Origin: Octopus bimaculoides
Taxonomy: Eukaryota
DNA: 64,000 nucleotides
Reading direction: 5' to 3'
Assembly (NCBI RefSeq): GCF_001194135.2
Contig: NC_068988.1
Location: forward strand, 13,597,459-13,661,458
Below, piece by piece: positions 9,101-54,124 of the stretch (positions within the stretch are counted from its first letter, which is position 1; each line of letters opens with the position of its first letter). The notes under the pieces were generated by a model. It was not told where the DNA came from. It saw only the letters and a list, made by a program, of their open reading frames with translations, and did not search any database. Made by a program: the position numbers and the translations under genes.

Positions 9101-9884
9101 TCATATTCCAATATTACAAAGTCTAAATTAAATGACCTTAGAGTTAATTAAAGCTACAAATCTGGCAAGATTTCAGTGATGTGAGTGTTGCTAAGTATTG
9201 CTAGCATAAAATTCTCATTCAGAACAAAAAAAAGTCTATAAATTTATAAAAATCACTTAATGTTGAACCTTCAAAGTTTAATTTAGGGGAGATTCACTGG
9301 GTTTTAGTTCAACTGGAAAATTGAAATGACAAGGAAATGTGCATTCACATACTTTTATGTAGTAAATAGCTATCTCTGAACCCTATCATCATCTTTCCAT
9401 CATTGATACATCTACTGTATTTCTTCATGCTATTTGTCAAGCCATTTGGATTTCAAAAAACAACTTCCAAATGATTAGAAAAAAGTAAACAAAAATAAGA
9501 TAAAATAAAACAATGATAATTAAACATTGTATGTAGGAATTCACCATTTAAGGAAAGTGAGTAAATTAAATGGAGATTGCAAAGAGGCTGTAAAGTTATG
9601 TAGCAAACAATTCTTTTGAACTTACAAGTGAGAGATCAATAGTCCAGCACCTTAAACCTACAGCTATTGAAAAGCAGTTCATTTCATCAATTATATCTAT
9701 TTTCTCAGTTGAAAAGATATGTTTTATCTAAATTGATATTATATTCAATATCTAAATCTATATATTAGGTAAATTCAATATTTTTGTAATATAGCTAAAA
9801 CATATTTTAGAAACAAATATCAAATTAATGAAAATATGCTTAAAAACAAAACACTTTTTTTCTACTTAAATGGAAAAATGATGT

Positions 9885-9887
9885 TGT

Positions 9888-9924
<37 letters not shown>
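9885..9924. repeat. (TG)n microsatellite
   Basis: Direct reading. Confidence 0.95.
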
Positions 9925-9928
<4 letters not shown>

Positions 9929-10129
9929 ACAAATAAATGATATATTATGATGTAGTCTGGTGAATAGTAAGGAAATTACGTGTATGCTTGTGAGAGCCAT
10001 ACAAGTCATATATAGAAATACTGCCAACAAGGTATGAATTAATAATGGATTCAGCAAGGAATTTAGCATACCTTTACATATCCACAAGGGTTTGATTCTC
10101 AAACCTTTCCTGTTTATTGTAGTTCTCTA

Positions 10130-10779: not shown

Positions 10780-10951
10780 ATTGCATTTGGAATAGCAATG
10801 TCATTACCTGTTGATGACAGCATACGATTTGGTTTACTTTCCACAACTTGTGTACCAGGAGGTGGTTTGGGACTAAGTATCACGTCTGTCACAGAAGGGG
10901 AGATGAGCCTCAGCATAAGTATGAATGTCATCAGTATGGTAGCAATGTTGG
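10780..10951 (+). CDS. SLC10-family (sodium/bile acid symporter-like) transporter, internal coding exon (phase 0 to phase 1)
   Basis: Acceptor ttttctttcag ends at 10779 and donor G|gtaagt starts at 10952. The 172 nt translate without stops as IAFGIAMSLPVDDSIRFGLLSTTCVPGGGLGLSITSVTEGEMSLSISMNVISMVAML+G, containing the SLC10 C-x-P-G-G and G-[DE]-M-x-L-S motifs. Too short or ATG-less to appear in the ORF track. Confidence 0.92.
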
Positions 10952-11384
10952 GTAAGTATTACTAAACATAAATACATATAGCTTATCATAATATAAAGTT
11001 CCAATATAAACTAAATATAAATTTCACCAAAAAATTAAACAAATCACCATATATATATAGAAAATGTAAGATCTTACATTTGATCTCCCAGAATGAATAA
11101 TTTATGTTTATTCTCATTGGAAACTACAATTTATAAAGCCCCACCCCACATCCATTCCCCAGTTCTGATTCTCCCACACATTCCTTGAGGATCCATCCAA
11201 TTACCTCATCACCACTATTTTTTCCCAGCTCCACCCAATCATCTCCACTTCTAAATTCTGAGTAGCCAAGTAGCTCCTTTACAGCAAGAAACCTGTTCCC
11301 CTTTGGCCCCTTCCCTTATACTTTAATCCCTCATTTCCTAGTATAAAGCCACCTCTCTTTGGGTTTGTAATCTTGCAAGCTGCA

Positions 11385-11578
11385 TGATGTCCTCACTATG
11401 TTGGTGGCATTAAAAATAAAAGCACTTAGTATATGTTGTAAAGTGGTTGGCATTATGAAGGGTATCTAGCCATAGAAACTATGCTAAAGGAGATAATGAA
11501 GCATGATGCAGTCCTTTGACCCATCAAACTGTTTAACTCATGTCAGCATGGAAAATGGACATTAAATGATGGATGCTA
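11385..11578 (+). mobile_element. RTE-type 3' tail repeat
   Basis: gtaaagtggttggcattatgaagggtatc ... catgtcagcatggaaaatggacattaaatgatg, homologous to other copies in the window. Confidence 0.7.
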
Positions 11579-14511
11579 TATTGAGCATGACACCCCAATT
11601 CATACATTTGTTTCAAACAGAAAATTACAAAGAGCTTTGAATTTAAATGTTATCATAAAAAACTTTTCCCTAAATGAACAAAAATTTATAGAAATGAAGA
11701 AAATGTATTAAGTAGGAAAGGCAAACCTAGTTTATTACCAGTTTAACACCACCAACTGGGCCCTTTGGATGTCTTTAACAGAGTTGATACTGTTGTAAGC
11801 ATTTGGACCAAGTCTACAGTCTAAGGATAAATGTGTTGCATTTATCTTTAGAAAGATGGATCAATTGTTATTGCCAGAAATTGATAAAAGAATGAAGTTT
11901 AACTGGAAATATAATGAGATAAATAAAATTCAATATGAAAGATATCAAATTAAGTGCAAAAGAATAAGATTCTTTTAATGTAAACACAGATGTTTTAATT
12001 GCCAATAATTGTGTAATGTTGACTCTTCATTTACATATTAGTCAGTATTTGTTAAAAATAATTTATTTCTTTGATTCACTAGTGTTTTATAAAGATCTAA
12101 TAGATATTTGATTAAAATACTGAACTTATGATTGCCATAACATACTTCAGACAGTTATAGTCAATATAGCTCAGGCAACAAAGAGCATAACTACTTCTCC
12201 AAAGAAAAAAGAAAATACAAAAAAAAAAAGCAAAAAAAAACATGGCATATGTTCAAATCTAACATAAGAATTTTGTTGAGTTTGGAAACAAAATTTTCTG
12301 TGCGCATATCTTGTTTTAGTGACTGGTGATATCACATTGGTGTGAAAGCAATTAAGTGACAGAGAATACTCAGTACTGTTAAAAAGAGCAGAGTAAAAGT
12401 TTTTCAGAGCTGAGTCTGTAAGAATCATTACCCAGAAGTTTTTATTCTCAATCCTCAGGTGATTGGTCTTTTGGTGCTTGAAAATTTTTTTTTTTATATA
12501 TAACACATCAGTTGGATCCATTTGGACCATGCTGAAGACTCAGTTATACACTTATACATGGAACCAGAAATTCTTACCAAGTGTAAACAAGTGTAAGAAT
12601 CTATAAAAATTTGAAGAATGAGGTGACCTATTGAAATGATTTTTGATAAATTTGTATGAAAAGTTCTCTTGAAGGAGCCTGTAGTGAACTATTGAATACA
12701 CACAAATGTAGAAAATGCATACATTTGTACATGTGTATATGCCCATGTGTGTCTAAGGTGAATCTCTTTGAGTCAGTAGATTAATTTTTTTTAATGAAAA
12801 CTTATTCTACTACTGATATGTAAAACAATTATATGATATATAAACATTATTGGAATTAAATATTACTATTCTTGCATAAATACTCATATTTTAAAATGTA
12901 ACAGTTAACAGAGATGAACCAAAGTATATTACTGATGTTTTTTATCTATGGATCCCAGTTTCACGAAAGGCAATTCTAGCAGAATTGGAACTCAAGATAT
13001 TAAGCTGTCTAGCTCAGCTCTCTTCTATTTGTGTTCTCATTACAGAAATAAACTACATTAAAATCAGATAATAGTTTTGAGGAAAATATTTATGAATAAA
13101 CATGTTTTGACAAAATAAGACACTTAAAAATTGATAATTTAGGAGTCTTACAACTGCAAGACTTTAAACTGTTAAACTCAATATTATCTTATTAACACTT
13201 ATATGACAATTTAGCTGGTCTTTTTACTAGAAAGAGGGGCTGAATATACATATATTCTCTCCATTGAAATTTAGGTATAGCATTTTAACCAAATAACAAC
13301 CTTATTCTTTTAATAACTTTGAAAAAAATACTTGTTTTCTTTAGTGTAGAGACATCAGTGGGCTTTAAAATCTACGGAAATATTGACAAAAATTTATTTT
13401 TATTCTAAAATAGGGAAAGGAAAAATGGTTGGAAAATGAAACTCAATGAAAAATGGGAGGAAATTTAAACATTTCTATAATGGTAACTGAAATATTTAAT
13501 GAAGTAGCTAAACCATGTTAAAACATGTACTTGAAGGGAATCTATTAAAAAAAAAAATCATTTTATTCTATCCTATTCCTCTATGTAACAGAAAAATTCA
13601 GCTAATTTTTTCCTATGTATAATTGGAACAAATAAAGCAATAAAAGGCAATGTATATATATATTAAAAAAAAGTACAGATAGTATAATTTCCAAAAGTTA
13701 CACAAAGTAAATGTTTTAAAAAGATCAATAGCTTCCATTTTGATTTTAAATATGACAACATAAAAAAGTAAAGAATGCTTGGAATTTCTCTCTTTATCTC
13801 ATTCAATATGAACATGTGTATAAGCGCATGCATACTTAGATACATTTCTTACATCTGTTAAGTAATTGAAAACTGACGATGATGACGATAATAATACTGA
13901 TGCTACTAATAATAATGTTGAAACCAAATGAAACCATATATTAGTTTATATAGCAACCAAATGAAAGAAAATAAATTTACAGCTGTTAAGCCACAAAAAT
14001 GGGAAGGCAACAGTGAAAGGCATATTCTTTGATTTCTACATTAAAATTATTCCAAGTTTATATCATGGGGTACACAAACAGCTGTGGATTGCTAAAAAAA
14101 TGAAACATTGACATGTTTTGATGAGAATAGAATATTAATGTTTTCTGCCCTTGCATTTTCCCATATGAAGTCATCTGAATTAGCAGCAGATGGAACATTC
14201 TGGAGATTGCAATTTTCTAACCCCTGCTTTTTAAGACATATCAATGTAAGGTATCCTATCTAAAACTAAATAGTTAATACAAATAAAGGCAGAAAAGATC
14301 TACAAGTTGTAATAATTTAGTTCAAATGAATTCATTGGACACATACAGGTGAAGAGCAGTTAAAACAAATTTGTTATTGGATGAAATTCAACATACACAC
14401 AACATCTATTTTATATAAATATGAAATGCTTGCAAAGTTTTTCTTGTATCTCATCAAAAGAAACGTCATCATGTGTGCCACACTGTGCAAATAAAACAAG
14501 TTTACAGTAAT

Positions 14512-14735
14512 TTAACCCTTTCATTACCAATCCAACTGAAACCGGCACTGGATCTGAGTACAAATGTCTTGTTTTCATAAGTTCTGAATTAAAATCTTCT
14601 ACCAAACCTTAGTCACAATTTATGTTCCTAACACTAGCTAAATGATAACTAAGTTATTTTACTAAATTCTTTGTTATATCTAAAGTAATTGAAAGAAACA
14701 CAGAGCATCTCAAAATACAGTAATGAAAGGGTTAA
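14512..14735. mobile_element. piggyBac-type MITE, family E (intronic)
   Basis: Perfect 16-bp inverted ends TTAA-CCCTTTCATTAC (14512-14527) and GTAATGAAAGGG-TTAA (14720-14735). The interior is homologous in reverse to 50577-51020 (shared aagttattttactaaatt core). Confidence 0.85.
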
Positions 14736-15689
14736 ATAGAATAAACAGAGTGAGGTGTCCACAACATTACTGGTTAATGGTATTTTCTCCATTTAATATT
14801 TCTATAATTCACAAATTCTATGCCCCACTGTATTCAATTTAGTTAACTATAGATGTTACACCATGTCACAGATGGAAAACATGATAATTTTTCACACATA
14901 TATATAATATTTCACATTAACCAAGCAATTCTCTTACCACTACTTCAGCAAGTGTGGTAAAGTCTATGCTTTACTAAGGAGGTTTAATAAAAAGGAAATA
15001 CATCTGTAGTTGTCTTTGTATGTGCCAAAATGGTATTAGTTATTGAGCCAGTGTTGTCTTTTCCTTAGTGCATGAATATTCTAATTAGACTTAGAACTTT
15101 GATGCTCATTTTATTAAAAATGTTAAAATTAACTTAACTATCATCTGTGTAACTGCTAGGTCATTCAGTAGACTACTTTTCTGTGTTAAAAAAAAAACTT
15201 AACCTTTCATCCATCTAGCATTGATATAATAAATAACAGAAGCATGGAGAGAGAATTAGATAATAAAAGAAATTTTTACTATTTAATATAAAGAGTTGAT
15301 GGATTATCATTAAATGTTCAATTAATTTATTGTCACAAATGTACTGGATCACACTTCCTCCAACAACAACAAAAACATACTGATAAGCATAATTTCAATT
15401 ATATTCTACTTAATATGTTTTAAGGTGATAATTGTTTTGCTCGATACATGCAAGAGGATTATAGCAATATATTTTTTTAATAAATTCCTATTTGTAAGGT
15501 TCATAATCATCTCGAAACATAATCATTACTTATCTTAGGCAAGTATAAAATCAAGTTATATCATTTAATCAGATGTTAGGTATACAGTTCTAAAAAAAAA
15601 CAAAAAAAACAGAGAAATAGAAATAAAAGAAAACCACCAAACGGTCAATTATGAGACTTATGCACTGTCTGAGGCAATGAAAGAACTTT

Positions 15690-15845
15690 TATGCAGTTGC
15701 TCAACCTAACAGAAATAGCAGCAAAATCATCCTCAGATTTTACTCACCATCTTGAAAAAGGACAGGATGGTCTTTATTGGAAAGCTTTTGATCATAAATT
15801 TGCTTAACAAGGATGGTGTGAGGCTAAATAACAACAATAACATCA
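15690..15845. mobile_element. Short interspersed repeat family F fragment
   Basis: agaaatagcagcaaaatc..cctca ... ggaa.gcttttgatcata ... ggctaaataacaacaa, shared with copies near 30060, 49175 and 63370. Confidence 0.55.
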
Positions 15846-18169
15846 AGCTAATTTGTCACCTTGTAGCAAATTTTGGTCAATTCTGCAAAGAATAGTTTCC
15901 TATGAAAATAACAGGAATCGAAATTTGTCTCCCGAGTAGAATCCATTCACTTCAGTCAGGCTTTCCAATGCAAATAGACCCTATTTTTGATTGAGGGGAC
16001 CAGCTTCTATAAGCAGGTAGATAACTTATTTGACTGTGAATGTTTCACTTTGATTAATCACAATTTCAATAAATATTGAGACAGAAAGAATTAATAAAAA
16101 GCAGAATTTATGAAGAAATTGATGAAACAACAAAGACACATCTATTCATGTATATTTATAGTGACTAAGAATACAAGTAACATAAAATATAACTGATATT
16201 CACATATTTCATATGATGAAAATGATATTCATATGATGAGAATGAAATAGTATATCATAATTTAAAAGCAAGTGAAAATTATTATGTATATAAAACCCAA
16301 TTTTCAAATGGTAGAGTAATAAAGAAGCACTAGGAAGTGGAGGAAATTAAAGAGATTAATGCACAAGACAAAAGAAATGGACACTGCCACTAAACAATAT
16401 GGTATGTGTATGCTGACAGGTAAATGGCAGTGAAAAATGTAGCTTTCTGGTTTGTTGAGAATTATGAGCAGTTTTTCAAAAAAAAGAAAAATGATTGAAG
16501 ATGATGATGGTGAGGATACTAATTCGCTATTAACTCTTAAAATTATTTACAATTTTATTTAACTTTAATGCAATGCTACTTTTATATGGCATAAATTCTA
16601 ATACACTATCATATATAAGTTTATAATACATTTTGTCCATACTTTTTGAAAATTAAATATTAAAGGAGCACATTATTCATGAGAACTAAATGTTATCCAT
16701 TTTTCTAGTTAATACATGGTCTTATTCTGGATGATGTAATTGGAAAGAAAATTATATTGTTCAAGCTAAGTGATGTGCAATGAAAATTTTAAATCATCAT
16801 AATGTTGTTTCATTATTTTATGACAGTAATAATACATTAAATGTTCTTTATATTTCATAAGTATTCCCACATCAAAAATTGTAGTGATCATGGATCTTTC
16901 CAGTTTTACTAACACACACACACAAATGATTAACAAGTAAAATGTAAAACTAAAACAGAAGCAATAAAAGTATGAAATGCATTTTGTTTCTGTCTATACA
17001 CTGCTACATATCAGCCTAAGTATAATTACTGCTATAAGAACATATACTTAGAATATTGTGTTTCAATAAGCTGCTATAATAGAAATCATTAAAAATATAT
17101 ACAATGTGTATAAAAATATCTCTTTTTATACTATTAAATGATTTTTGCTTTATATGCTAAACGAAATACATTGCATAGTTGAAAACAAAATTGTCAGATC
17201 TTGAATGCCTGATGTTCAAAGCATAAGAATCCAACAAACATTTTATAAAAAAAAAAAAAAATCATAGTAAAAAAATTAGAGGGTTTTGAGAAATCCATTC
17301 TTAAATGTTTGTTCTTTTGTTACAACACATAGAACATTGCGTTTTCTCTTGTTTATGTATATCATCAAAACCAAATATAACAGAAACATCATGTGATTTC
17401 CACAATGTTGCCTTTATGGTAGGTATACTTTTATGGTCTATTACACTGATAAAGTTCAAAGGTCACCTTCAAAATTATTTTATTTTGTTTTGAATTTGTC
17501 AACTTCCCAATATATTTTATACAGTAGTTATGATAAATCAGATAAACTCTTTTTCCATAAATTATAATACTTTAATGAGTCACTGCATCTTATAGATAGG
17601 GTATATTTTTCTGGGATTTCATTGTTCATAATTTCGGTGCACATAATACATGAGTATGTATTATAAATGAATAAAGTAATTTAAACCTATTAAGAAAAAA
17701 AAAAGTGGCTTCTCTTGTAGTTCAAATATTCTGAACTAGTTTAAAAGGAATACATACTTTATCAATATTGATATTTAGGCTATACTGTTTATCAGCAAAT
17801 AAGAGTTGATTCACTAACTTCTTACATTTCAAATTTAAAAAATGAAATTTAGTTTATTATGAGTGCATAAACAATACTCATACTAATTCGAATTTTAAAA
17901 AGCTATAGATTACAATATATTATGATTGCTTTTATACAAAATTCTTGTGTATATATTTATTTATAATTATATTGGGATAAATTCTCACACCTAAAACAGG
18001 TGTGAGAAACTTATCCCAAAAGGACCATAGAAATTTATCAACTTTTAATTTTATTTTCTTTACTGAGATTTTAACCAGAAAAATTATTATTATAACTGGT
18101 TTGTTGAAAACAGAATCTGTAATCCATAGGTACAAACTAAGATGGCTTAAAAAAGAAATTTACTACAGA

Positions 18170-18790
18170 CTCATTCACACAACATTTTTATGTATAACTA
18201 AAAACCACATGTATGCTAATTGCTGTAACCTAAGATTGGTTATGTCTCCCACACTCATTAACCTACTCACTCTTACTTCTAACAATACACATTTCAATGC
18301 AGATGACTACTACTCTTCATTTCTTCTTAATCTTCTACATCACATCTGGAGCAGGACTGAAAAGAGAAACCTCAAAACCTACTTTGATAGCAACATTTCA
18401 ATCTATATTTCCACACCAACACCAAGACAACTGTTGCAAACATGAAAGACAAAGTTTCTATCATATAACTGAAGTTTCCAAAATTGTTACAAAAGTTATA
18501 CTTTACAATCTCTGATGCCGACCTTATATGTATAATGTAACAGTACAACTCTGTTGTATTCTTTCACCACAACTTTCTCTCACTCTTTATTCCTGTTTCT
18601 GTTGTACCTGTATTTCAAAGGGCCTTGTCACACTCTATGTCATGCTGAATCTCTCTGAGAACGTTAACGGTACACATGTCTGTGGAGTGCTCAGCCACTT
18701 GCACGTTAATTTCACGAGCTGGCTGTTCTGTTGATCGGATTAACTGGAACCCTCATCATAGTAACTGACGGAGTGCCACGATAGACAACA
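18170..18790 (+). mobile_element. Decayed CR1/L2-like LINE 3' fragment (source of ORF 18002..18445)
   Basis: VMSPTL...NNTHFNADD resembles RT 'GSVLSPTLF...YADD'. The 3' segment ccttgtcacact...cacttgcacgttaat recurs inverted at 40686-40775. Confidence 0.65.
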
Positions 18791-18859
18791 TGCCCCCATC
18801 AAAAGCCATTCAATTAATTAGAAAAGATTCGTTAATAAAGATGCTACAAACATTGGCTT

Positions 18860-19150
18860 ACAGATACTTTTTTTTTGCCTCTCTGACTCTTGTACCACTA
18901 TTACAAACCTCCAGCTCTGATAAATTAGCTATCCCTTCACCCAAGCCAATCTGACATAGCTCCTCATGTTATTGTCTCACCTTCCAGAACCAACACTAAA
19001 CACTTTTCCTAATTATTTCTCACACAAGTGCATTCATCTAGAATAACCTTGCCACACACATTTTTCATGATCATGTCAACCTTTAAATGTTCAAGCTGAA
19101 CATTAATCACATCAATCAAGTTTGAGATGACCTGCAAATATTACAACACT
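18860..19150 (-). mobile_element. Probable decayed RTE C-terminal fragment
   Basis: Purine-rich minus strand resembling the RTE 'GRPRKTW.EVV..DL' region; weak. Confidence 0.35.
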
Positions 19151-19610
19151 TATCCTCCACTGACTAAATACTGAGAGGTAAATAACAAAATACCAGTGAA
19201 CTTAGTTGTAAATTGATTCAGGAATATCCATTTTGGCATAGAGACCATAGTGGTATTTCTGTTTGAGTGCTGCTCTGCCACCTATGTACAGCATTTTGGT
19301 GAAACCAATATGAGACAGACAAGGGTGTGAACATGGTTGATTACAGGTGTAAGAAGTTATAAAGATGTAATATTTTTTAATAGATTAATATATGTTTGCA
19401 TTTTTTAATCTTCAAGTTTCATTGTTAACTTTACTAATAATAGGTTTTTTTCTTCAAAAATTATAATTTTATTAAGAAATATTTTTGTGAACTTTTCATT
19501 TATAATCTTGCTTTAAATATAATTAACTTATAGTTATTATTGAATTAAAACCATGATTTACTAAAAAATAAAATAAAAGCTTACAGTTTTCATTCTATAA
19601 CAACAAACAA

Positions 19611-19637
19611 TACTAACATAACTTCTGTTTCTTACAG
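19611..19637 (+). promoter_or_regulatory. Branch point (TACTAAC) plus pyrimidine tract and 3' splice site
   Basis: Perfect TACTAAC at 19611-19617, followed by acttctgtttcttacag. Confidence 0.8.
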
Positions 19638-20344
19638 GGACAGCTCCTCTTTGGATATTTGTACTAGGACAGTACTTTTTACATTTAGACGCACACAAAA
19701 CCATTCCTATTTACCACATTGAAGTGTGGTTGGTGTCAGTCTTCGTTGCCTATACAGGAGGGATATTAACAAAGTATTTAAAACCAAATGTGGCAGAAGC
19801 AATATTGAACTGGATAATCAAACCATTGCTATTACTTATGTGTATTTTATTTATCACCCTTGGTGTCTACATTAATATGTATGTATGGAACATATTGGAC
19901 ATGTATATTATATTAGGATGTACTCTATTACCAGTAACGGGTTGGGTTCTCGGATTTTTTCTAGGCTTGATATTCCGTCAAGATGGGCCAATTTTAGAAG
20001 CTCTCTCTCTCGAAACCTCAAGCTTTAACAATCTGATAACAGTAGCAGCTTTACGTTTTTCTCTCTCAAGCAGACCTGGGGATTTGTCATCAACTGTACC
20101 GTTTCTTGTTATTTTTACAACTCCTGGTATTTACATAGTATTATCCCTAATCAAATCTTTACGGCTTTGCATCATTAACTATTTACAAGAACGAAGACAA
20201 AAACAAGTTAATCGACAGTTTAGCATTGTTTCAGGAATAATTAACCAGGCAAATATTACAGCATTATCAGCTCCTTTATTTATATCTGATATCTTGGATG
20301 ATGAAGACAGTTCTGATAATAAAGAAAAAGTGACAGTTTTATGA
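19638..20344 (+). CDS. SLC10-family transporter, terminal coding exon (C-terminal TM helices and cytoplasmic tail, stop TGA)
   Basis: Acceptor ttctgtttcttacag ends at 19637. The phase-1 join to the 10951 donor gives ...AMLG-TAPLWIFVLG..., matching SLC10 'ALG-M-x-P-L'. The frame continues into the supplied ORF 19724..20344, with hydrophobic helices and ALSLETSSFN at the SLC10 'ETGxQN' position. The two exons total 879 nt = 292 aa plus stop. Confidence 0.93.
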
Positions 20345-33123: not shown

Positions 33124-33330
33124 CTTTTATTTGTTTCAGTCATTTGACTGTGGCCATGCTGGAGCACCACCTTTAGTCGAACAAATCGACCTAAGGACTT
33201 ATTCTTTGTAAGCCTAGTATTTATTCTATTGGTCTCTTTTGCTGAACTGCTAAGTTATGGGGGACATTAACACACTAACATCGGTTGCCAAGCAATGGTG
33301 GGGCAGACAAACACATACACACAAATACAT

Positions 33331-33389
<59 letters not shown>

Positions 33390-33552
33390 CACGACAGGCT
33401 TCTTTCAGTTTCCGTCTACCAAATCCACTAAAAAGGCTTTGGTCAGCCCAAGGCTATGGTAGAATACACTTTCCCAAGGTGCCACGCAGTGGGACTGAAC
33501 GCGGAACCATGTGGTTGGGAAATAAGCTTCTTACCACACAGACACTCCTGTA
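33124..33552 (-). mobile_element. Full-length CORE-type SINE family B (tail type 1, internal (TG)n)
   Basis: Minus strand: tRNA-like head with B box ggttccgcgttcagtccc, MIR/CORE-like gcaccttgggaaagtgt, (CA)n, then a 3' module ending ccagcatggccacagtcaaatgactgaaacaaataaaag. Resembles octopus OR-type tRNA SINEs. Confidence 0.85.
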
Positions 33553-36619: not shown

Positions 36620-36850
36620 TCTCTTTCTCTCCCTCTCTCTCTTTCTAAATGACCTCCCCATCTCTAACTCGCTCTAAATGGTCTCTCTTTCTCTCACAAC
36701 CTCTCTCTACCTTCCCCTAAATGATCTCTCTCCCTCTCCTCTCCCTCTAAATGATCTCTCTCCCTCTCCCCTCCCTCTGATCTCTCTCCCTCTCCCCTTC
36801 CTCTGATCTCTCTCCCTCTCCCCCCATCTCTCTCTCTCTAAATAACCTCT
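36620..36850. repeat. Pyrimidine-rich minisatellite (units like TAAATGATCTCTCTCCCTCTCCCCTCCCTC)
   Basis: At least four recognisable (taaa)tgatctctctccctctcc units in an almost purine-free plus strand. Confidence 0.85.
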
Positions 36851-46940: not shown

Positions 46941-46950
46941 NNNNNNNNNN
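46941..46950. other. Assembly gap (10 N) with a duplicated 31-bp overlap
   Basis: agcatatgctgactgagaaacattgcaacct occurs identically at 46910-46940 and 46951-46981. Confidence 0.95.
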
Positions 46951-54059: not shown

Positions 54060-54124
54060 ACAACAGATAAATGGCTAGTGAGTGAATTTGGTAGATGGAT
54101 ACTGGAAGAAGCCTTTTGTATATA

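Follow-up and report, generated by a model that had tools for sequence, protein, structure and literature searches.

Can a protein keep the fold of the SLC10 carriers and do without the residues that bind their two sodium ions? The question is raised by a gene at positions 10780-20344 of a 64,000-nucleotide stretch of the Octopus bimaculoides genome (contig NC_068988.1; the whole stretch is referred to here as the window), which a first-pass annotation, made from the letters alone, took for an intact but atypical SLC10 paralogue with several canonical sodium ligands replaced. In human NTCP (SLC10A1), the Na1 site is formed by S105, N106, S119, T123, and E257, and the Na2 site by Q68, E257, T258, C260, and Q261 (PMC9242856, PMC10298714); the T258 and C260 positions are taken here as main-chain contacts. 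The analysis presented here found that the octopus gene encodes an intact SLC10-fold protein under purifying selection in which S105, N106, T123, and Q261 are replaced. Sequence comparison across 1.84 billion cluster representatives further suggests that this ligand loss is the hallmark of an old clade spread across Spiralia, rather than a trait specific to octopus or to cephalopods.

The octopus gene and its sodium-ligand positions

Two exons of the gene lie on the forward strand of the window and join in phase 1 to give 292 codons with zero internal stops. The upstream exon (10780-10951; 57 codons plus one base) is bounded by a canonical acceptor (ttttctttcag/ATTGC) and a canonical donor (TTGG/gtaagt), and, within the SLC10 core domain, encodes the protein from the end of transmembrane helix 2 (TM2) through TM3a, the PGG crossover, and TM3b to the beginning of TM4. 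The downstream exon (19638-20344; 235 codons plus stop) begins at a canonical acceptor (ttcttacag/GGACAG), ends with a TGA stop at 20342-20344, and encodes TM4 to TM9 plus a cytoplasmic tail of about 70 amino acids. The 8.7-kb intron between them (10952-19637, forward strand) has GT..AG boundaries and is collinear with its counterpart on Octopus sinensis contig L003, to which it is about 93-94% identical. The orthologous gene is already annotated in O. sinensis, where NCBI names its 429-amino-acid product (P0001) "sodium/bile acid cotransporter [Octopus sinensis]." The 292-residue octopus product shares 98-99% identity with residues 138-429 of this protein, from which it differs at four amino acids, and its upstream exon alone matches residues 138-195 at 98% identity (tblastn). 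The O. sinensis gene has the same exon structure, with three coding exons in all; exon 1 encodes 137 amino acids, including the Q68 equivalent, and by this comparison precedes window position 1 by about 9.3 kb, with residues 1-137 outside the window. The first-pass annotation had therefore placed Q68 outside the window correctly, while the exons that it numbered 1 and 2 are the second and third of three coding exons.

The open frame, the substitution pattern, and the agreement of family profile, structural model, and structure search all identify this as an intact, constrained SLC10-fold gene. Across the two exons, the ratio of non-synonymous to synonymous substitution rates (dN/dS) relative to O. 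sinensis is 0.21 (6.5 synonymous and 4.5 non-synonymous differences), well below the value near 1 that the first-pass annotation had named as the sign of a decaying gene. A 422-amino-acid orthologue (P0002), 76% identical over the part encoded in the window, is specified by intronless Logan contigs from two public sequencing runs, which presumably represent transcripts and probably derive from a second cephalopod species. Compared with P0002, the proportion of non-synonymous sites that differ (pN) is 0.14, and that of synonymous sites (pS) is 0.86, the latter saturated. A pseudogene or decaying copy was rejected on the basis of the open frame, the canonical splice sites, the dN/dS of 0.21, and a pN well below pS. 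The Pfam SBF profile (PF01758) matches the window-encoded 292 residues at 41.3 bits and the full-length orthologue at 68.1 bits, both above the gathering cut-off of 24.3. The full-length orthologue was modelled with AlphaFold2 from a 63-sequence alignment; the mean predicted local distance difference test score is 81.7, rising to 90-98 in blocks that make up most of the membrane core. The model presents nine transmembrane helices in a well-packed, inward-facing, NTCP-like arrangement, with the helices broken exactly at V-P-G-G (162-165) and S-S-F-N (322-325), so that the AlphaFold check proposed for this gene returned an NTCP-like fold with both crossover breaks intact. Foldseek matched the model to human NTCP (7pqg, 9qzq) at template-modelling scores of 0.86-0.87 and root-mean-square deviations of 2.3-2.4 Å, and to bacterial ASBTs at scores of 0.62-0.77, all at probability 1.00; the panel and core domains with two crossing discontinuous helices that define the NTCP/ASBT fold are thus both present.

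Within this fold, the ligand positions were read against human NTCP. The peptide CVPGGGLGLSITSVTEGEMSLSISMN (10849-10926, forward strand) aligns to NTCP C98-T123. In it, Gly-Leu (codons GGA CTA, 10870-10875) occupies the positions of the Na1 ligands S105 and N106, and the segment S-I-S-M-N (10912-10926) keeps the S119 equivalent as Ser and has Asn in place of T123. At the TM8 crossover, E-T-S-S-F-N (20012-20029) keeps the equivalents of E257 and N262, and Phe replaces the Na2 ligand Q261. In TM9, P-F-L-V-I-F-T-T (20099-20122) matches NTCP P286..F292-Q293, with Q293 replaced by Thr. All three peptides quoted in the first-pass annotation are encoded at these positions, and its gap-free hand alignment was reproduced by two programs. 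Against PDB NTCP chains, phmmer aligned both motifs gap-free (E = 4e-12 to 1.8e-11) and paired LSLETSSFNN with V-S-M-E257-T-G-C-Q261-N-V. The columns of a 43-sequence MAFFT alignment, in which the human NTCP sequence was checked to be 100% identical to PDB 7zyi_A, agree with this register. The register is sound because the two aligners concur and the spacing of the anchors is identical in the octopus protein and NTCP (18 residues from PGG to the L-S pair, 5 residues from E257 to N262); an alternative register that would restore the ligands was rejected on the same grounds.

The frame, the splice sites, the PGG crossover, S119, E257, and N262 are therefore intact, and the changes relative to human NTCP are S105 to G, N106 to L, T123 to N, and Q261 to F, as first proposed. 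The Na1 positions S105, N106, S119, T123, and E257 read G, L, S, N, and E, with only S119 and E257 identical, and the Na2 positions Q68, E257, T258, C260, and Q261 read Q (from exon 1 of the orthologue), E, T, S, and F, so that neither side-chain ligand set of a Na+-coupled symporter is complete. In the numbering of the orthologue, E320 corresponds to E257, Q131 to Q68, and S182 to S119, and N186 stands in place of T123. The replacements affect residues that are functionally essential in Na+-coupled members of the family: in NTCP, changing S105 and N106 together (S105A/N106A), or Q261 alone (Q261A), abolishes taurocholate uptake while surface expression remains normal (PMC8773476). The residues that replace S105, N106, and Q261 in the octopus protein are unable to coordinate a cation. 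Next to these positions, the serine (AGC) at 10906-10908 in E-G-E-M-S-L-S is Asn in both O. sinensis and NTCP (N117); this difference, one of the four between the two octopus species, sits two residues ahead of the retained S119.

Distribution and origin of the divergent subfamily

To place the octopus pattern among its relatives, 1.84 billion cluster representatives were scanned with HMMER using a mollusc-protein profile, which returned 182 proteins at E <= 1e-30; the best 150 of these, together with the hits of a first search, were aligned to the profile, and the ligand columns were read. All sites were covered in 132 sequences, of which 111 are canonical (S, N, T/S, E, Q), 16 carry the octopus pattern, and 5 have scattered substitutions at one or more ligand positions. 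The divergent subfamily that contains the octopus gene is named here clade X. Its 16 full-length proteins come from cephalopods, gastropods, oyster, the annelid Owenia, the nemertean Tubulanus, the planarian Schmidtea ("slc10a-6"), trematodes, and a cestode, so that, among the relatives identified here, clade X appears to be restricted to Spiralia. In these proteins, position 105 is Gly or Ala (Ser once, in Biomphalaria P0038), position 106 is His, Leu, Phe, or Tyr in 16 of 16, position 123 is Asn or Ser except in the cestode, and position 261 is Phe, Leu, or Ser, to which partial last-exon sequences add Met and Val. E257 and N262 are kept throughout the clade except in the trematodes Trichobilharzia and P0054 and in the cestode. 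The window-encoded protein fits this definition with G, L, N, F, E, and N at the respective positions and a T-V-L end.

A few members depart further from the pattern. E257 is Ala in Trichobilharzia (P0047) and in the trematode P0054 and His in the cestode Sparganum (P0070), and the cestode protein is also altered at PGG, S119, and N262; these parasitic flatworm copies may have left transport function altogether. A search for a compensating Lys or Arg, able to mimic the bound cation, found none among the positions that are invariant and specific to clade X, and this candidate was rejected, as no clade-specific charged substitution turned up. Ser170, directly after the site, is confined to cephalopods.

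Canonical SLC10 paralogues coexist with clade X in Tubulanus, Owenia, and Babylonia; insect SLC10s are canonical, as is CsSBAT of Clonorchis (Glu441/Gln445), the sole functionally studied flatworm SLC10 (PMC7746286). Canonical invertebrate SLC10s, even those found alongside clade X in a single species, keep every one of the replaced ligand residues. The proposal of an atypical SLC10 paralogue accordingly stands as regards an intact, constrained gene with replaced ligands, but the atypical features are not peculiar to this gene and belong to a Spiralia-wide clade. Likewise, the altered last-helix motif PFLVIFTT, with Thr for Q293, is present but is nothing special, as Thr is also found there in canonical protostome SLC10s. 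No paper describing clade X as a subfamily was found, and no literature was found on planarian "slc10a-6."

A second feature shared across the clade is the cytoplasmic tail. In the window it occupies 20213-20341 (forward strand) and contains R-Q-F-S-I-V-S-G-I-I-N, A-L-S-A-P-L-F, and the C-terminal E-K-V-T-V-L; molluscs, nemerteans, annelids, and planarians all conserve these tail motifs, with the clade consensus R-x-F-S-I-x-S-[GS]-[IL], then A-L-S-A-P-L, then a C-terminal T-x-L. The T-x-L C-terminus occurs in 47 of 54 clade X members, and an end of the general form [ST]-x-[LVI] in 22 of 116 canonical relatives. By its pattern, T-x-L-COOH fits a class I PDZ ligand, and the R-x-x-S of the tail could be a kinase site.

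The position of clade X in the SLC10 family was examined using neighbour-joining bootstrap trees over 307-362 aligned columns, with Kimura, Poisson, and p-distances and two gap filters. Human ASBT, SLC10A4, and SLC10A6 were included after exact verification, and SLC10A3 and SLC10A5 were database sequences. Bootstrap values were stable across the three distance measures and both filters. Clade X was recovered at 100%, as were SLC10A3 + SLC10A5 and the group of SLC10A1, A2, A4, and A6, from which the octopus protein is excluded. Clade X joined the canonical protostome SLC10s at 96-100%, compared to at most 2% (0-2%) for clade X + A3 + A5. Orthology with SLC10A3/A5, suggested by Gly at 105, an aromatic residue at 106, and the names assigned automatically, was rejected on the basis of these bootstrap values and the absence of PF24690, and kinship with SLC10A4, suggested by a shared T-x-L end and three coding exons, was rejected at 0% bootstrap. 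Because clade X groups with canonical protostome SLC10s and not with A3/A5, the erosion of the ligand sites in the two lineages would be parallel rather than inherited. The most economical reading of these sequences is duplication of a canonical protostome SLC10 followed by independent loss: the protostome ancestor would have possessed an SLC10 of the P3/P5 side with its ligands complete, this gene would then have been duplicated in the spiralian lineage and one copy would have lost the Na1 pair and Q261, and vertebrate P3/P5 would have independently eroded a partly overlapping set of residues.

Candidate transport mechanism and surroundings of the locus

Since the modelled protein keeps the nine-helix NTCP architecture with both broken crossing helices, it is most likely still an elevator-type carrier. 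That this carrier operates without the classical coupling to two sodium ions seems fairly probable from the ligand pattern, and the possible Na+ independence suggested in the first-pass annotation is reasonable as a hypothesis. Transport would be coupled to protons or to a single cation at the retained Glu-centred site (E320, Q131, S182, N186), or would be facilitative, and the substrate would be other than a bile salt. Molluscs are not known to make bile salts, which makes some other small amphipathic anion or metabolite the probable substrate. The conserved T-x-L C-terminus would tether the carrier to a PDZ scaffold. The complete reading, in which an old, Spiralia-wide, Na+-uncoupled carrier, either proton-coupled through its lone Glu or a uniporter, moves a non-bile-acid metabolite and is positioned by a PDZ interaction, is put forward tentatively.

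Several points weigh against these readings. E257, Q68, and S119 are retained, and the change of T123 to Asn or Ser keeps an oxygen ligand, making a single remodelled Na+ site possible. The exon encoding Q68 lies outside the window, and the retention of this residue is read from Q131 of the O. sinensis orthologue alone. Ligands were compared on alignment columns; the trees are distance-based only; and the PDZ ligand is a reading of the C-terminal pattern alone.

The strongest of the alternatives builds on the retained residues and holds that the carrier is still Na+-coupled, through one ion bound at a remodelled site composed of E320, Q131, S182, N186, and backbone carbonyls of the crossover. 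Nearly every clade member keeps E257, Q68, S119, and N262, position 123 is always Asn or Ser outside the cestode, part of the Na2 coordination in NTCP and ASBT comes from the T258 and C260 positions (PMC10298714), here treated as main-chain contacts, and the retention of a buried Glu speaks for continued binding of some cation at that site. However, loss of S105 and N106, or of Q261, is by itself sufficient to abolish transport in NTCP (PMC8773476), and positions 105, 106, and 261 in clade X (G/A, L/H/F/Y, and F/L/M/S/V) offer no consistent ligand, leaving single-sodium coupling rather unlikely.

Less credible still is a non-transporting membrane protein with a regulatory or scaffolding role, similar to other SLC10 "orphans" that have no known substrate. 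SLC10A3, A4, A5, and A7 transport neither bile acids nor steroid sulfates in heterologous assays (PMC10298714), the SBF scores of clade X reach only 51-68 bits compared to 108-166 for canonical members, and the long conserved tail has a PDZ-type end. On the other hand, the entire membrane core is strongly constrained, including both crossover motifs, E257, and N262, the model is that of a well-packed, inward-facing, NTCP-like carrier, and SLC10A5, which is likewise ligand-poor, has since been tied to bile-acid uptake (PMC11737122). Finally, an artefact, whether a decaying copy or a misregistered alignment, has nothing in its favour beyond the unusual residues themselves and can hardly be entertained in view of the open frame, the canonical splice sites, the dN/dS of 0.21 with pN well below pS, the orthologous contig (presumably a transcript), the gap-free register between invariant anchors in two aligners, and the conservation of the same residues across four phyla.

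As for the surroundings of the gene, the annotation of O. sinensis has a TRAPPC13 gene (413 amino acids) that runs on the opposite strand across the entire SLC10 locus and extends past it (window 1-22357 corresponds to L003 11668-34135), suggesting that the SLC10 gene may be nested in it or interleaved with it. No TRAPPC13 exon could be confirmed in the window from runs of perfect conservation, from Pfam, or from tblastn. On the minus strand, open reading frames of at least 42 amino acids gave no Pfam match in roughly the 3' three-fifths of the window, and tblastn with a human TRAPPC13 query gave a single, non-significant match (E = 0.87) at L003 30436-30501, or approximately window 18645-18710. 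The 44 kb beyond the SLC10 stop (20345-64000) contain no long open reading frame of obvious meaning; minus-strand frames tested there had zero Pfam matches, and the plus strand was not examined for short exons. Ten N at 46941-46950 presumably mark an assembly gap, (CA/TG)n-type dinucleotide microsatellites, which translate as CVCVCV/THTHTH, occur at approximately 9880-9935, 33330-33390, 54070-54110, and elsewhere, and a 26-bp CT-rich tandem repeat is located at 36702-36838.

Comparison with known SLC10 systems

Half of the human SLC10 family (A3, A4, A5, and A7) lacks an agreed substrate or coupling mechanism, and how the two Na+ sites contribute to the elevator cycle is being actively studied. 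Clade X, a conserved lineage that is phylogenetically independent, drops S105, N106, and Q261 and keeps E257, Q68, and the crossover; it shows what evolution treats as dispensable in the ion site. If the proposed Na+-uncoupled reading holds, the clade would constitute a second natural experiment on an SLC10 elevator without two sodium ions, independent of P3/P5, and a tractable way into the functions of the family's "orphan" half. Oyster (XP_011429003), planarian (AKN21473), and octopus all provide orthologues amenable to experiment. In genome annotation, these genes bear names ("sodium/bile acid cotransporter", "cotransporter 5") that are probably misleading as to both ion and substrate. No established view of the SLC10 family is changed by these results.

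Compared to NTCP and ASBT (SLC10A2), the octopus protein has the Pfam SBF domain, the nine-helix panel/core crossing fold (template-modelling score 0.87 to 7pqg), and conserved Q68, PGG, S119, E257, and N262. In contrast, sequence identity is only 22-24%, Q264 and Q293 are replaced in addition to the ligands S105, N106, T123, and Q261, and the octopus protein has a disordered N-terminal extension of about 85 amino acids and a conserved C-terminal tail of about 70 amino acids ending in T-V-L. NTCP and ASBT also lie on the opposite side of the deepest split in the tree.

Vertebrate SLC10A3/A5 belong to the same half of the SLC10 tree as clade X and share with it the PGGG motif, Gly at 105 in most members, a bulky non-ligand residue (Tyr) at 106, and Leu or Phe at 264; in addition, SLC10A5 of the mammals sampled has Leu for Q261. 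Oyster and Biomphalaria clade members are named "sodium/bile acid cotransporter 5" and "SLC10A3_5" in NCBI and KEGG-style annotations. However, SLC10A3/A5 have lost S119 (Ala) and kept T123, the reverse of clade X, and SLC10A3 as well as fish and amphibian SLC10A5 keep Q261. They also carry the NTCP5_P3_N extracellular domain (PF24690), which at E <= 0.01 is present in primate A5 and A3 but in neither P0001 nor any of four further clade X proteins. Non-conserved equivalents of S105 and S119 in A5, or in A3 and A5, were already noted by Saeki et al. (PMC3570448), so that a vertebrate parallel, with N106 affected as well, has been published. Within SLC10A5 (P0191-P0310), position 261 is Gln in shark, lungfish, and newt and Leu in platypus, mouse, and primate, so that the Na2 ligand seems to have been lost stepwise, while SLC10A3 keeps Gln261 throughout.

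Human SLC10A4 (P4), a synaptic-vesicle orphan, resembles the octopus gene in its three coding exons (PMC10298714), and its verified T-S-L C-terminus resembles the T-x-L of clade X. In contrast to clade X, SLC10A4 keeps the canonical S-N and Q ligands (PGGNLSN, ETGSQN) and groups with NTCP at 90% bootstrap, while clade X + A4 was recovered in 0%. By both tree and distance, the nearest relatives are instead the canonical protostome SLC10s (insect P0032-37, Babylonia P0053, Owenia P0051/58/59, and Clonorchis CsSBAT), which share with clade X the PGGG motif, Thr at 293 and, in some members, a [ST]-x-[VIL] C-terminus. These canonical members keep S105, N106, S119, T123, E257, and Q261 and score 108-166 bits against SBF, whereas clade X scores 51-68 bits and has added invariant Trp residues and the R-x-F-S-I-x-S tail motif.

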